Positions 8,561 to 34,999 of a DNA stretch of 64,000 nucleotides are shown one piece after another; positions within the stretch are counted from its first letter, which is position 1; the number at the start of each line of letters is the position of its first letter. Location of the stretch: positions 248,001-312,000 of IMG/VR virus record IMGVR_UViG_3300032288_004964; one strand, 5' to 3'. The notes under the pieces were generated by a model. It was not told the DNA's origin. It made no database searches and saw only the letters and a program-made list of their open reading frames with translations. The translations under genes were made by a program, and so were the position numbers.

Positions 8561-8587
8561 ATAATAAATATATTTATAATAATATTG

Positions 8588-8618
8588 AAACCCAGTCACA
8601 AAATGACTGGGTTTTTTT
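8588..8618 (+). terminator. Attenuator terminator 2
   Basis: aaacccagtca-caaaa-tgactgggttt plus U tract; tggctgagtt (8540-8549) can pair with the 5' arm. Confidence 0.85.
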
Positions 8619-8627
8619 AATTTATAT

Positions 8628-8701
8628 AGGTGAGTAGCTTAGATGGTAAAAGCATGTGTCTTATACACACAAGATAGTGGGATCGTTACCCACCTCACCT
8701 A
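8628..8701 (+). tRNA. tRNA-Ile(TAT)
   Basis: tgtgt-CTTATAC-acaca; T-loop ATCGTTA. Confidence 0.85.
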
Positions 8702-8929
8702 CTGAAAAAAATAAAAATGAAAGGAAAAATGAAAAGTTGAAATTGAATTGTTGGTTTATTTATAGATGTGTTAATAGTAATATCTATTTTCACCGTGTTA
8801 AATAAGAATATTAAATGTCGTATTTATGAAAATGAATATGAGACATGGGTACCTGACTTAAACGGTAACATACAACGTAAAGAAACTAAAACAATTGTTA
8901 TTAACTTCTTAAGAAGATTAGGATAACAA

Positions 8930-9003
8930 GCAATAGTGGTGTTAATGGTTTAGCACATCTGACTTCCAATCAGAAGGTGTCGGTTCGAATCCGGTCTAAT
9001 GCA
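8930..9003 (+). tRNA. tRNA-Gly(TCC)
   Basis: tctga-CTTCCAA-tcaga. Confidence 0.85.
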
Positions 9004-9050
9004 CAAAGTGAGAAAACACTTAAAAACCATCCCACCAGGATGTAAAAATC

Positions 9051-9133
9051 GCGGGTGTAGTATAGTGGAGGCGAAAGCCGTATTATATCGGTCTTCCAAA
9101 CCGAAGATGTGAGTTCGATTCTCATCACCCGCT
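9051..9133 (+). tRNA. tRNA-Gly(TCC) with D-loop hairpin insertion
   Basis: tcggt-CTTCCAA-accga; ggc-gaaa-gcc in the D-loop. Confidence 0.85.
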
Positions 9134-9146
9134 CAAATAATGTAAT

Positions 9147-9222
9147 GGGGTTACATGTACCAAGGCTTAGGCGAGACTGCTTTGCAAGCAATCTGTGGTG
9201 GGTTCGATTCCCACTAGCTCCA
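9147..9222 (+). tRNA. tRNA-Ala(TGC)
   Basis: TTTGCAA loop; G3.U70 pair; atypical D arm. Confidence 0.75.
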
Positions 9223-9234
9223 CAAAAAAAACAA

Positions 9235-9307
9235 GCGAAAGTAGCTCAGTTGGTAGAGCGTAACCTTGCCAAGGTTAAGGTCGCGGGTTCGAGACCCGTC
9301 TTTCTCT
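9235..9307 (+). tRNA. tRNA-Gly(GCC)
   Basis: taacc-TTGCCAA-ggtta. Confidence 0.85.
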
Positions 9308-9308
9308 C

Positions 9309-9452
9309 AAGATAGTAGCAATGTAAGAGTGTTACTTCGTATTTCAAACGACTAGTTCAGGTTCGAATCCTGGGTTCCGCTCAAAATAATATAAGCGGAA
9401 TTAGTGTAACGGCAGCACAGTAAAAACACACTCAGCAAATTTTCTCTATCTT
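9309..9452 (+). ncRNA. YrlA/Y-RNA-like permuted tRNA mimic
   Basis: Long closing stem (agatag/ctatct, gagtgt/acactc, ttact/agtaa) enclosing T-arm, loop-closed acceptor stem, then D-arm. Confidence 0.6.
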
Positions 9453-9456
9453 ATTA

Positions 9457-9529
9457 GGGCCAGATGCCAACGGCAGGTCAACTCGCTTGCACCGAGATTG
9501 TTTGGGTTCGATTCCCACTGTGTCCACCA
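9457..9529 (+). tRNA. Atypical tRNA-Ala(TGC), encoded CCA
   Basis: ctcg-CTTGCAC-cgag; G3.U70; bulged acceptor stem. Confidence 0.65.
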
Positions 9530-9559
9530 ATGTATTTGGACAAGAACCTAAATTAAAAT

Positions 9560-9590
9560 AAAAAAAGCCTCATTTGATGAGGCTTTTTTT
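9560..9590. terminator. Bidirectional intrinsic terminator
   Basis: aaaaaaagcctcat-ttg-atgaggcttttttt between convergent units. Confidence 0.8.
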
Positions 9591-9592
9591 AT

Positions 9593-11056
9593 TTAAGATA
9601 TTTTAATTTTCATTTTTGTTCCGGTGTCTATTTTATCACAGGATAAATCAAATTTGTGTTCTTTTAATATGGCAAAACAGATATTTAGTCCAAGCCCGGA
9701 TTCACTTTCTTTCTCTACTGAATAAGAAGATAATATTTTATCAAATTTATTTTGAGTCAATCCTATACCATTGTCTTCAATAATTAAATATTCATTCTCC
9801 ATGTATATTTTAACTTTTTTACTTTCGCTTTTATTATATTTTAAACCATTTTTTATTAGATTATCAATAGCGTTCCAGAAAAGTGTCTCATTTACTATAG
9901 CATTTGGTAAATCTTCGACTTCTACTTGTGTAGAATATGATGTTGTGAGAATACATCTATTTAATAAATCTTTTAAATTTACATCAGTTTTATCTAACAC
10001 TACATTTTGTTTAACAAGATTGGTAAACTCATATACCGACTTATAAACTTTTTGAGTATGATTAAGTCCTTCTTTAATCATTTTAACTGGTCCATCAATT
10101 TTTAATTTTTGTAATTCTTCTGGAGTAACTCTTTTCTCTAAAGAGTTTATACCTCGAGGAATATAAGTATTTATACCAGAGTGCATATCATGTCTAATAA
10201 TTCTAGCGGCATGTTCTAAATAAGTATTCTTTTTATTAATATCTCTTAGTTGTTTTTCAATTTCTTTATCTTGTACTTTAATTGTTTTTCTTTGTAAAAG
10301 AGCAAGTATAGAAAGCCCCATAATTGAAGCACATATAATTGCCCATATTAAATAAGTTCTTAATTTTGATTTTTGAACTTCTAAATCTTTATTTTCTACT
10401 TGTAACTCTCCTTTAACAACAGTAAGATCTATTATGTCTTTTTCTTTAGATAATGTTTTAATTGTACCTGTCTTAGAATCTATTACTTGTTGATTAGCAT
10501 TAGCCTTTTGTAGTGAATCTTTTTCAAATATTAATTTTTTAATTTTGTTATCAATTTCTTCAGCTACCTTTTTTAAGTCTTCTTTTGATAAATTATCATA
10601 AGATTGTGGAAGATTTTTAATAAAATTTTGGTCATTCTTAACTTGATTAGCTTCATTTTCATCTAATTCTGCAGGAGTAGGTGCGGGTACCATTATCTCT
10701 TTGATAAGATAAATATACTCTTTAGAAGCAGATATTTGTGATTCAATAGGACGTATTTTTGAGTTAATAGACTTGTTGAACCACCAATTAGCTCCCTCAA
10801 ATTCTTTTCTCGAATAAAGAGCCAATCCTATTTCTAAACTAATTGATTTTTCTTCAGGTGATAATTCCGAATTTTCGCTATCTCTGATTTTATAGATATC
10901 AATTTTATCCATAAGATTATTAATGTAATTATCATCTGGGCAAATAGGAACTCCTTGGTCCCAAACAGATTCAACACTTTCTGTTGTATCTATCTTAGTT
11001 TGTGAATAAGAGGCCAAACAGATAAGGCTAAATAATATTAAGAAATATTTTTTCAT
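9593..11056 (-). CDS. Membrane sensor histidine kinase
   Basis: Signal peptide, TM helix, H-box RHDMHSG, N-box NLIKNGLKY, G1 DNGIG, G2 GLGL. Confidence 0.85.
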   Translation of the reverse strand: MKKYFLILFSLICLASYSQTKIDTTESVESVWDQGVPICPDDNYINNLMDKIDIYKIRDSENSELSPEEKSISLEIGLALYSRKEFEGANWWFNKSINSKIRPIESQISASKEYIYLIKEIMVPAPTPAELDENEANQVKNDQNFIKNLPQSYDNLSKEDLKKVAEEIDNKIKKLIFEKDSLQKANANQQVIDSKTGTIKTLSKEKDIIDLTVVKGELQVENKDLEVQKSKLRTYLIWAIICASIMGLSILALLQRKTIKVQDKEIEKQLRDINKKNTYLEHAARIIRHDMHSGINTYIPRGINSLEKRVTPEELQKLKIDGPVKMIKEGLNHTQKVYKSVYEFTNLVKQNVVLDKTDVNLKDLLNRCILTTSYSTQVEVEDLPNAIVNETLFWNAIDNLIKNGLKYNKSESKKVKIYMENEYLIIEDNGIGLTQNKFDKILSSYSVEKESESGLGLNICFAILKEHKFDLSCDKIDTGTKMKIKIS

Positions 11057-15148: not shown

Positions 15149-15267
15149 TTAATGGATGGTGATTGAAAGAGTTACTTCGTTTAATGGAAAAACAATTGAC
15201 TTCTAATCAGTGCACGGTGGTTCGATTCCACCAGTATAAAACCTCTTTCTACCTTTTCCTCCATTAA
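15149..15267 (+). ncRNA. Y-RNA-like element carrying D, anticodon (TCT, Arg) and T arms on a long closing stem
   Basis: ttaatgga/tccattaa and gaaagag/ctctttc stems; shares GTTACTTCG...AGTA(T)AAAAC with the 9309 element. Confidence 0.55.
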
Positions 15268-15269
15268 AT

Positions 15270-15449: not shown

Positions 15450-15521
15450 TGCGATATAGCTTAATGGAAGAGCGGCTCCAGACATAGGGAGTTAGTCTTG
15501 GTTCGATTCCAGGTATCGCGA
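15450..15521 (+). tRNA. tRNA-Met-like with 8-nt anticodon loop (AGA-CAT-AG)
   Basis: gctcc-AGACATAG-ggagt; normal D and T arms. Confidence 0.6.
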
Positions 15522-15526
15522 CAAAT

Positions 15527-33610: not shown

Positions 33611-33695
33611 GAGGAAGTTCCAGAGTGGTCAAATGGGGCTGTGTAGTAACACGGCTGACTTTTAGTCTTCAGAGGTTCAAATCCTTTCTTTCTCA
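33611..33695 (+). tRNA. tRNA-Tyr-like with 8-nt anticodon loop
   Basis: gctgt-GTAGTAAC-acggc; long V-arm; A73. Confidence 0.6.
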
Positions 33696-33785
33696 CAAAA
33701 AATATTTTGAAAAACATTTGGTAGAATAAAAAAAAGTTTCTATCTTTGTAAAACAAAATTAAAAGGTATTATATAAAAAACATAT

Positions 33786-33861
33786 TGCGGGAGGGTGAAA
33801 CGGAAAATCATTCCAGGCTCATAACCTGACGAGATACTTGGTTCGACTCCAAGTCCCGCTA
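33786..33861 (+). tRNA. Initiator-type tRNA-Met(CAT)
   Basis: cagg-CTCATAA-cctg; 1:72 mismatch. Confidence 0.75.
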
Positions 33862-33895
33862 CTAAAAAAAGTTTTTATAAATTTTTTACAAAAGA

Positions 33896-33979: not shown

Positions 33980-34840
33980 TTACAGAAATAATGACTTCGG
34001 TCATTAAAGTAAGTAGGGCGGCTTATAGTCCATAAATAATCTCTGAAAGGAGGATAAAGTGATCACAAATGCTAAATGTGATTGCGGCTTGACCGAAAGG
34101 TTGAGCTCGGGTAAGCGAGTGGAATACCATTATTCCTGAGTAGCCGAGGGTAACACTGTAGGCGAAATGGTTTAGTGATTAGGCGATGTAGATCGTCTGA
34201 TTGACTTCGGAAGAAGAATAGGAATAATCCATAGGAATCTTTGCAAGAAGTGGTGACCCACCAGTTATCATCATTGCGAATTCCAACTTGAGAGGTATCT
34301 CAAAGTCGAAAGACAATTTAGTGTACAGGTGGTGCTGTTACTAAACACTAAACTGACTACCAAGTCGGTGACCTTGCTAAGGTGAGGTCTGGTGAAGATA
34401 TCTTAAAGAGTTGTGATGGAGGCATCACACGGAGTAGTCTAGTATTCTTGAGGCCAAAAGCTTTGGGAACTAAGAGATAACCACTACTTCGACAAAATCT
34501 ACAGCACTAAAATTTACTTTTTGACGTAAAAATTAAAACTTAAATCGAAAGTGTTATCTAGTTACTGATAGAAAGGTACCTACTTAGTTATGGGTTGTCC
34601 ATAGCCACATAAGTCCGAAAGACTGGTGTGATTTTACCGAAAAGCTTATAGGGGGTCGAATCCCGAACTAGCCTGCGAGGGTTGGATAAGTAGAGTAAGT
34701 AGAGAGTATTCAGTGACTCAAGGGGTGGTTAGTCTAACTAACCGGTACTGACAAGATACCATTCAAAAGATGGTGGATAGATTTGGGAATACATAATCCA
34801 AACAAAGACTTGTCATATTAAGATGTAATCTCAGTCTTTT
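33980..34840 (+). ncRNA. Large structured ncRNA, GOLLD-like
   Basis: ~850 nt with no ORF in the track, higher GC than flanks, many GNRA/UUCG-capped hairpins, flanked by tRNAs; family name is from size and context only. Confidence 0.6.
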
Positions 34841-34844
34841 ATTT

Positions 34845-34920
34845 GGTCAGTTCGTCTAGCGGCATTCAGGACGGATATCTATTCAGATATCAAACATTGG
34901 TTCGAATCCAATACTGACTA
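34845..34920 (+). tRNA. tRNA-Glu-like with 8-nt anticodon loop
   Basis: gatat-CTATTCAG-atatc; normal D and T arms. Confidence 0.6.
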
Positions 34921-34999
34921 CTAAGTTTTCGTAGTGGTTAACTTACTCCGAAAGGGGGGTCTGTCAATGACAGTGTGACTACCTCAAAGTCACACATAT

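Follow-up and report, generated by a model that had tools for sequence, protein, structure and literature searches.

In a freshwater jumbo phage with a genome of ~385 kb, positions 9309-9453 of the window encode an RNA that is very likely a divergent Y RNA of the YrlA type. The element is a member of a known RNA family (YrlA) and not a new kind of element. The window is the whole stretch of DNA that was analysed, 64,000 nucleotides long; it corresponds to G000:C1:248,001-312,000, where G000 is an IMG/VR virus record of 385,333 bp and 95% completeness. This part of the phage is AT-rich and holds ~30 tRNA genes together with one GOLLD RNA. The phage DNA was found in freshwater, plankton and groundwater metagenomes, and its nearest public relatives are huge uncultured phages, for example LR745206 (635 kb).

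The element lies in a tRNA/Y RNA operon (~8616-9594) that is bracketed by terminators at 8587-8615 and 9556-9594, and tRNA genes flank it closely on both sides:

9235 to 9308, plus strand: tRNA-Gly(GCC), called by ARAGORN and Rfam (63.6 bits); its 3' end is at 9307/9308 and abuts the 5' end of the element.
9309 to 9453, plus strand: whole putative YrlA-type Y RNA, ~145 nt, delimited by the self-match of model R1 (see below), the MFE fold and homologues.
9458 to 9526, plus strand: tRNA-Ala(UGC)-like gene, 4 nt downstream of the element, with an Rfam tRNA match of 29 bits, exactly at threshold.
9556 to 9594, plus strand: predicted intrinsic terminator, end of the tRNA/Y RNA operon.

The tRNA-Gly(GCC) gene does not encode CCA. 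The tRNA-Ala(UGC)-like gene has acceptor-stem mismatches and a D stem of 3 bp, and it is also kept beside the copy of the element in L004, a 476-kb viral contig. In LR745206, tRNAs lie 1 nt away from the homologue on both sides and the downstream one is a clean tRNA-Ala. This close packing recurs in the family, where an upstream tRNA lies 0-2 nt from the RNA in 9 of 34 members and a downstream one 1-6 nt from it in 7. When 1,001 bases were compared with four metatranscriptome sets (contigs), coverage was obtained only for the conserved tRNA-Gly(GCC) and came from other organisms; it carries no information on the element.

The window holds further tRNA genes of uncommon form. A tRNA-Gly(UCC) at 9051-9133 (plus strand), found also at L004:777-856, is 83 nt long with an extra ~10-nt hairpin in the D loop; it matches the Rfam tRNA model with 58 bits and received no ARAGORN call. 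ARAGORN reports tRNA-like genes with 4-base anticodons (acat, agta and attc) at 15450-15522, 33611-33696 and 34845-34921, all on the plus strand, and several other tRNAs of the window are unusually long (85-88 nt, ARAGORN). The GOLLD RNA is full-length (34430-34837, plus strand, 270 bits), with tRNA-like genes flanking it at 33611-33862 and 34845-34921.

The initial annotation had described, at 9309-9452, an anticodon-like hairpin, a T arm, a loop-closed acceptor stem and a D arm, all within a bulged terminal stem. We recovered every one of these modules; the start of that span held, and its end did not, as the element extends to 9453. Its parts are as follows:

9309 to 9315, plus strand: 5' strand of closing helix P1 (AAGAUAG), pairing with 9446-9452; double changes in 7/7 pairs, 94.9% paired in 34 sequences.
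9315 to 9321, plus strand: GUAGCAA motif of the internal loop, for which the family has the conserved consensus GUAGYRA; conserved in TROVE-adjacent hairpins too.
9327 to 9332, plus strand: 5' strand of helix P2 (GAGUGU), pairing with 9428-9433; 6/6 pairs doubly changed.
9331 to 9339, plus strand: GUUACUUCG, the most conserved motif, near-invariant in 34 sequences, which includes the YUAY of YrlA.
9337 to 9351, plus strand: V arm with a 4-bp stem and the 7-nt loop AUUUCAA (UCGU-AUUUCAA-ACGA); the stem covaries.
9357 to 9373, plus strand: T arm UCAGG-UUCGAAU-CCUGG with loop UUCGAAU; 99.4% paired, 3 covarying pairs, GG/CC invariant.
9374 to 9401, plus strand: acceptor-like stem GUUCCGCU/AGCGGAAU of 7 bp plus 1, closed by a 12-nt A/U-rich loop; compensatory changes in 8/8 pairs.
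9402 to 9418, plus strand: UA linker (positions 8-9) and D arm GUGU-AACGGCA-GCAC (D arm 9404-9418); 100% paired.
9428 to 9433, plus strand: 3' strand of helix P2 (ACACUC); covariation in 34 sequences.
9440 to 9446, plus strand: 3'-side internal-loop motif UUUUCUC, conserved in the family and in TROVE-adjacent hairpins.
9446 to 9452, plus strand: 3' strand of closing helix P1 (CUAUCUU); covariation in 34 sequences.

The minimum free energy structure computed by RNAfold is the proposed fold (-34.5 kcal/mol, z = -3.3), and 1 of 200 shuffled sequences gave a fold that was equally good. Helix P2 is the equivalent of the tRNA anticodon stem, and the hairpin that had been called anticodon-like is the V arm of YrlA. 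The acceptor-like stem carries no CCA, and a tertiary pair A15:U48 is present, with U48 at 9356. Since the V segment folded alone (MFE) often misfolds, we restricted loop statistics to the 18 family members with a clear, MFE-predicted 7-nt V loop: U occupies position 2 in 18 of them and a purine position 6 in 16, and the loops display 12 triplets.

A blastn search against the phage collection matched only the neighbouring tRNAs. An exact 23-mer search yielded one close relative, the copy in L004, which is ~93% identical. Element, L004 copy and the proposed structure served to build a covariance model (R1), whose self-match spans 9309-9453. R1 found a homologue in LR745206 with 125 bits and many compensatory changes in the acceptor-like stem (GCGGAAU/GUUCCGC in the element, GUCGGUG/CACCGGC in LR745206) and in the small hairpin, and further homologues in L038, L026 and L090 at 98-133 bits. 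We then used the pattern GTTACTTCG-gap-GGTTCRANTCC to fetch 80 viral loci; ARAGORN left 86 of 94 pattern matches without a tRNA call. On the 80 loci R1 produced 84 matches at E <= 0.01, some of the weaker ones overlapping ordinary tRNA genes; 34 of the 84 are full-length at E <= 1e-6 and come from contigs of 28-65% GC. More than 30 viral contigs hold full-length relatives of the element.

In the 34-sequence alignment, which is fitted to R1, standard pairs occupy 95.6% of cells, as compared with 37-46% when the partners are slid, and 30 of 34 pairs are changed on both sides. We repeated the analysis on 12 homologues with MAFFT and RNAalifold, where the alignment is not fitted to the model, and obtained the same six helices, including an independent prediction of P1, with compensatory changes in 21 of 30 pairs and a covariation term of -10.5 kcal/mol. 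The tertiary Levitt pair 15:48 covaries as well (G15:C48 in 17 of 34 sequences, A15:U48 in 11), and a tetraloop closes the acceptor stem in many family members. Of the grounds on which the initial annotation was to be given up (no model hit, no transcript, no covariation in the closing stem), two are contradicted, as the closing stem is doubly changed at each of its pairs and relatives of the element give model hits. Every helix covaries in the 34-sequence alignment and recurs in the unfitted prediction; the structure is, on comparative sequence grounds, real and under selection.

To which family does this structure belong? In published YrlA RNAs the two ends pair into a stem, which bears in turn the V hairpin, of lesser conservation, the T arm, an acceptor-like stem (AS) that is closed, and the D arm; the RNAs carry a conserved YUAY before V and, near the 5' end, the motif GNCGAAN0-1G, a putative Rsr contact, and they usually lie at most 4 kb from a Ro60 gene on the same strand (PMC4201824). 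The crystal structure of YrlA displays the L-shape of a true tRNA, in which the stem stands where a tRNA has its anticodon stem (10.1101/312249; PDB 6CU1). Several of these features are found in the phage element: (i) the T arm lies 5' of the D arm, with the loop-closed acceptor stem between them, on an end-formed stem; (ii) the tRNA core of YrlA (T loop UUCRANY, D-loop GG, UA linker and covarying 15:48; PMC4201824) is present as UUCGAAU, AACGGCA (G18G19), UA and A15:U48; (iii) YUAY is present as UUAC (9332-9335) at the start of the V region, and the Rfam YrlA alignment of L061 places it against CUAc; and (iv) R1 detects rsr-adjacent YrlA RNAs, with full-model matches of 28-49 bits beside TROVE in 8 bacterial loci. 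Module order, YUAY, core nucleotides and these R1 matches all support the YrlA-like reading first proposed from the sequence.

The element departs from published YrlA RNAs at the 5' motif and in its distance from the Ro60 gene. GNCGAAN0-1G is not found; the element has GUAGCAAUG there, and the family GUAGYRA. The GUAGCAA site is at the position of the YrlA GNCGAA motif, opposite CgaAUG in the Rfam alignment of L061. GUAGYRA is a variant of the published 5' motif, and GUAGCAA is a candidate Ro60 contact. As for the distance, the element is on the same strand as the Ro60-like gene of the phage and 143 kb from it, not within ~4 kb.

The Rfam YrlA model (RF02553) does not match the element, either at its gathering score (69 bits) or at E <= 10. 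A weak match of 17.5 bits at 9278-9333 proved to be the T arm of the neighbouring tRNA-Gly and was discarded. The Infernal check that had been suggested for this locus therefore fails on the element itself and succeeds on relatives recovered by R1: phage members match Rfam YrlA over model positions 1-114 with 52.7, 48.4, 45.1 and 44.3 bits (E 3.5e-9 to 1e-6). Scores of relatives overall range from 33 to 53 bits, and none of more than 30 members attains the gathering score. We examined 18 bacterial loci (L226-L297), of which 12 hold R1 matches, 8 of them beside a TROVE gene. R1 matches beside same-strand TROVE genes, located by tblastn with the phage TROVE protein, extend over several bacterial phyla and occur in Paenibacillus, Cohnella, Amycolatopsis, Haliscomenobacter, Pontibacter, Hyphomonadaceae and Clostridia contigs; at the 69-bit gathering score Rfam YrlA matched 0 of the 18 loci. 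Since rsr-adjacent bacterial YrlA-like RNAs also miss this cutoff, the failure of Rfam on the phage element says little. The YrlA family is probably much under-annotated under RF02553, and a large, diverse phage branch of it is missed by current models.

Does the phage encode a protein partner? A Ro60 gene is indeed missing from the window, as the initial annotation stated; elsewhere the phage does encode one, and a search for TROVE/Ro60 located it 143 kb upstream of the element:

G000 112,966 to 114,417, plus strand: protein of 483 aa in which a TROVE domain (E 5.9e-17) is combined with a vWA domain.

Among solved structures, Ro60 from Thermus phage phiLo comes closest to this protein (E 1e-23). 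A tblastn search with the phage protein matched 99 of 50,697 phage records, and among the records with an R1 match TROVE is encoded in 28 of 33, and in all 12 of those that are at least 90% complete. The element and the TROVE gene are 143 kb apart in G000, 135 kb in G001 and 126 kb in LR745206; in many other phages (small contigs), relatives of the element sit directly upstream of TROVE. RtcB, which we also looked for, is absent from the phage genome, so that there is no operon of the rsr-rtcB type. Y RNAs with tRNA-like domains are already known, and so are phage Ro60 proteins and Y-like RNAs (PMC4201824; PMC12135203; PMC7824862).

A further connection between element and protein came from short repeats. 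Two stretches of the element's stem, the 12-mer AGTGTTACTTCG and the 10-mer AAAACACACT, each occur exactly twice on the plus strand of the 385-kb genome, and the second copy of both lies in a 77-nt hairpin ~370 nt upstream of the TROVE gene. Related phages keep this hairpin ahead of their TROVE genes, and changes in its stem are compensatory; in the TROVE-adjacent copies, P2 is exchanged from GUGU/ACAC to GAGU/ACUC to AAGU/ACUU. We built a second model (R2) from the TROVE-adjacent 77-nt hairpin and found the element to be its only significant match in the 64-kb window (24 bits), with the tRNA-like part as an 83-nt insertion; the LR745206 homologue scored 42 bits. Common to element and hairpin are GUAGYRA, GUUAC and UUUUCUC, which flank the covarying helices and form a candidate protein-binding site. 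TROVE co-occurrence, shared stem motifs and the R2 back-match tie the element to Ro60, and, as far as sequence evidence can tell, it most likely partners the phage-encoded Ro60-like protein.

Could the element instead be a tRNA-like decoy or sensor that works independently of Ro60, for example for host tRNA-targeting nucleases, with the V hairpin as bait? In many members the V hairpin has the geometry of an anticodon arm (7-nt loop, U at 2, purine at 6), the element is located in a tRNA array, the phage has tRNA repair genes and, in this clade, the element is unlinked from the Ro60 gene. We nevertheless consider this explanation improbable, because the presence of TROVE in 28 of 33 records and the stem motifs common to the TROVE-adjacent hairpin tie the element to Ro60. 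A decoy role and Ro60 partnering are not mutually exclusive, and the decoy is unneeded to explain the data.

Alternatively, the element could be a circularly permuted tRNA gene whose transcript is cleaved and joined again at the closing stem, and opened in the loop of the acceptor stem, to give a decoding tRNA with anticodon UUC (Glu). The order of 3' half, linker and 5' half does resemble that of permuted tRNA genes, a resemblance noted in published discussion (10.1101/312249). Two positions of the loop AUUUCAA resemble U33 and A37, the acceptor stem has 7 bp, and the genes of the phage include those for an Rnl1-type RNA ligase and for a CCA-adding enzyme. However, the triplet varies even in close relatives (UUC with C at 37 in L004, GCA in LR745206, UCC in L090) and takes 12 different forms across the family, at odds with the conserved anticodon and identity elements expected of a decoding tRNA. 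The geometry also fits poorly: the hairpin stem of the element is just 4 bp, seven nucleotides rather than one separate the D arm from the stem, and many members close the acceptor stem with a tetraloop. Neither ARAGORN nor Rfam calls a tRNA within 9309-9453, which speaks against a canonical tRNA too. RtcB is missing from the genome, and bacteria are not known to have a splicing endonuclease. Finally, the family co-occurs with TROVE, and its stem is common to a hairpin that has no tRNA part. With a variable triplet and tetraloop closures, the alternative originally offered, a permuted tRNA processed from its flanks, is not supported as a decoding tRNA and appears very unlikely. We give hardly any credence to a functionless, decaying remnant of two tandem tRNA genes with an accidental fold, even though the element sits among duplicated, partly odd tRNA genes and a dimeric-tRNA origin of YrlA has been proposed (10.1101/312249), because every helix shows compensatory changes across phages of 28-65% GC and bacteria, the unpaired motifs are conserved, TROVE co-occurs, and the divergence of the homologues excludes that they are assembly copies of one sequence.

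How would a YrlA-type Y RNA be produced and used by this phage? The element would be transcribed as the second-to-last unit of the polycistronic tRNA operon. Since tRNA genes abut the element and members of its family, we infer release by tRNA-processing enzymes: 3' processing of the abutting tRNA-Gly would generate its 5' end, and an RNase P cut of the downstream tRNA-Ala-like unit its 3' end. As structure and covariation show, the end-formed bulged stem bears an L-shaped tRNA mimic made of T arm, closed acceptor stem and D arm, the stem replacing the anticodon stem and the V hairpin taking the variable-arm position. Motif sharing and co-occurrence point to GUAGYRA, GUUAC and UUUUCUC as the elements that may bind the phage Ro60/Rsr-like ring protein (TROVE and vWA). 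By extension of published Y RNA work, the tRNA-like module could tether the Ro60-like protein to a tRNA-recognising partner, or gate it. Candidates for the partner are RNA repair enzymes and, by the precedent of RYPER complexes, host PNPase.

An additional maturation step may be envisaged. Of the YrlA RNAs studied, only that of Mycobacterium smegmatis has an acceptor stem of 7 bp, and in vivo this RNA is cleaved by RNase P and receives a CCA tail. By analogy, it is plausible that RNase P opens the 7-bp acceptor stem of the phage element, with its long A/U loop, and that a CCA tail is then added. The phage itself encodes RNA enzymes, namely an Rnl1-type ligase, a second RNA_ligase-domain protein and an enzyme of the CCA-adding/poly(A)-polymerase family:

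G000 330,848 to 331,450, 154,209 to 154,673 and 383,124 to 383,492, outside the window: phage RNA repair genes.

The RNA ligases and the CCA-adding enzyme amount to a tRNA repair toolkit alongside Ro60.

The same genome holds other RNAs in which a Y-type stem is found, with or without a tRNA body:

15149 to 15268 of the window, plus strand: non-permuted Y-like RNA between tRNA-Val(GAC) and tRNA-Thr(UGU).
L193:409-538 (G000 245,608 to 245,737), 2.3 kb before the window start: open-acceptor tRNA-shaped RNA.
L006:929-1005 and L006:1018-1297 (G000 ~112,523 to 112,891), upstream of the TROVE gene: 77-nt Y-stem hairpin followed by a ~280-nt RNA.

The RNA at 15149-15268 has a closing helix AAUGGA/UCCAUU, GGUGA, a helix GAAAGAG/CUCUUUC and GUUACUUCG; its stem encloses a D-like region, an anticodon-like hairpin (loop CUUCUAA) and a T arm in non-permuted order. 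Its orientation resembles that of Yrn1, it scores 24.4 bits with R2 and matches the Rfam tRNA model in part, and look-alikes are present in LR756502 and LR745206. The RNA at L193:409-538 is a circular permutation of the 9309-9453 element: it has a free 7-bp acceptor stem, a D arm, a V hairpin and a T arm, and in place of the anticodon arm a closed stem with Y-stem motifs. ARAGORN makes no tRNA call on it. Its homologue in G001 shows compensatory changes in the acceptor and T stems, and RNAs of the same fold occur in G001 (a second copy), G020, G027 and G035, with relatives in at least four other, TROVE-encoding phages. A model of this open-acceptor form (R3) matched mostly ordinary tRNAs, and only its matches longer than 110 nt were inspected, by folding. 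The ~280-nt RNA, which is conserved, has a closing helix GCAAAC/GUUUGC, which is GAGGAC/GUCCUC in relatives, contains the AUAGCGAUAG and GAGAUACUUCG motifs and lacks a T loop; a terminator is placed just before the TROVE start.

The topologies found are thus (i) the bare hairpin and the ~280-nt RNA, (ii) the permuted YrlA type, (iii) the non-permuted D/anticodon/T type and (iv) the open-acceptor single chain, and one genome can carry several Y-stem/tRNA chimeras. Taken together, these RNAs suggest that the putative Ro60-binding stem is a module which has been combined with tRNA bodies in more than one topology, and they provide a simple route to the YrlA order by duplication. That the stem is a portable module, grafted in this huge-phage clade onto tRNA bodies in every topology, is a tentative idea that we hold to be rather unlikely. 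If it were true, the open-acceptor form would be the missing intermediate for the origin of YrlA, as a tandem duplication of an open-acceptor gene, if reading began halfway through the first copy and stopped halfway through the second, would give the exact YrlA order. The chimeras could then bring the phage Ro60 to the CCA-adding enzyme, Rnl1, RNase P or the translation apparatus, and such delivery could counter host tRNA-cleaving defences. Irrespective of this idea, huge phages suggest that a tRNA-like Y RNA need not stay linked to the Ro60 gene and can, presumably, mature within a tRNA operon. Such RNAs may be annotated where GUUACUUCG is accompanied by the V hairpin, T loop, closed acceptor stem and D arm and the genome also encodes TROVE at another site, and their compactness suits them to experiments on the partners recruited by the tRNA-like module.

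How does the phage element compare with known systems? Permuted tRNA genes of the Cyanidioschyzon merolae type likewise place the 3' half first, have an initially closed acceptor stem and have ends that pair; they mature to decoding tRNAs via a splicing endonuclease and a circular intermediate, whereas in the phage element the triplet is not conserved and the stem bears Ro60-type motifs. Phage phiLo, with its Ro60 and the RNAs Yrl1 and Yrl2 (PMC12135203; PDB 9KOP, 9L5Y), shares with our phage an encoded Ro60 and Y-like RNAs upstream of its gene. Yrl1 and Yrl2 differ in that they contain the CGAA motif and are not described as tRNA-like, and no unlinked copy in a tRNA array is reported for them (PMC12135203). 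With the M. smegmatis YrlA the element has in common the 7-bp acceptor-like stem; cleavage of the phage RNA is a prediction, and the M. smegmatis RNA lies just upstream of rsr. YrlA itself (RF02553) is a tRNA-like Y RNA of bacteria and mycobacteriophages and binds Rsr/Ro60 (Chen et al. 2014, PMC4201824). The tRNA modifications pseudouridine 55 and dihydrouridine also count among the traits of YrlA RNAs. From this family the element differs by scoring below every Rfam threshold, by having GUAGYRA for GNCGAAN0-1G, by a well-formed, anticodon-arm-like V hairpin that is an insertion to the Rfam model, and by its place in a tRNA operon 143 kb from the Ro60 gene, where its ends would be set by neighbouring tRNAs. 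What it shares with YrlA is the module order, YUAY, the T and D arms, the UA linker, the Levitt pair, a variable acceptor stem, same-strand co-occurrence with TROVE and model homology in both directions.
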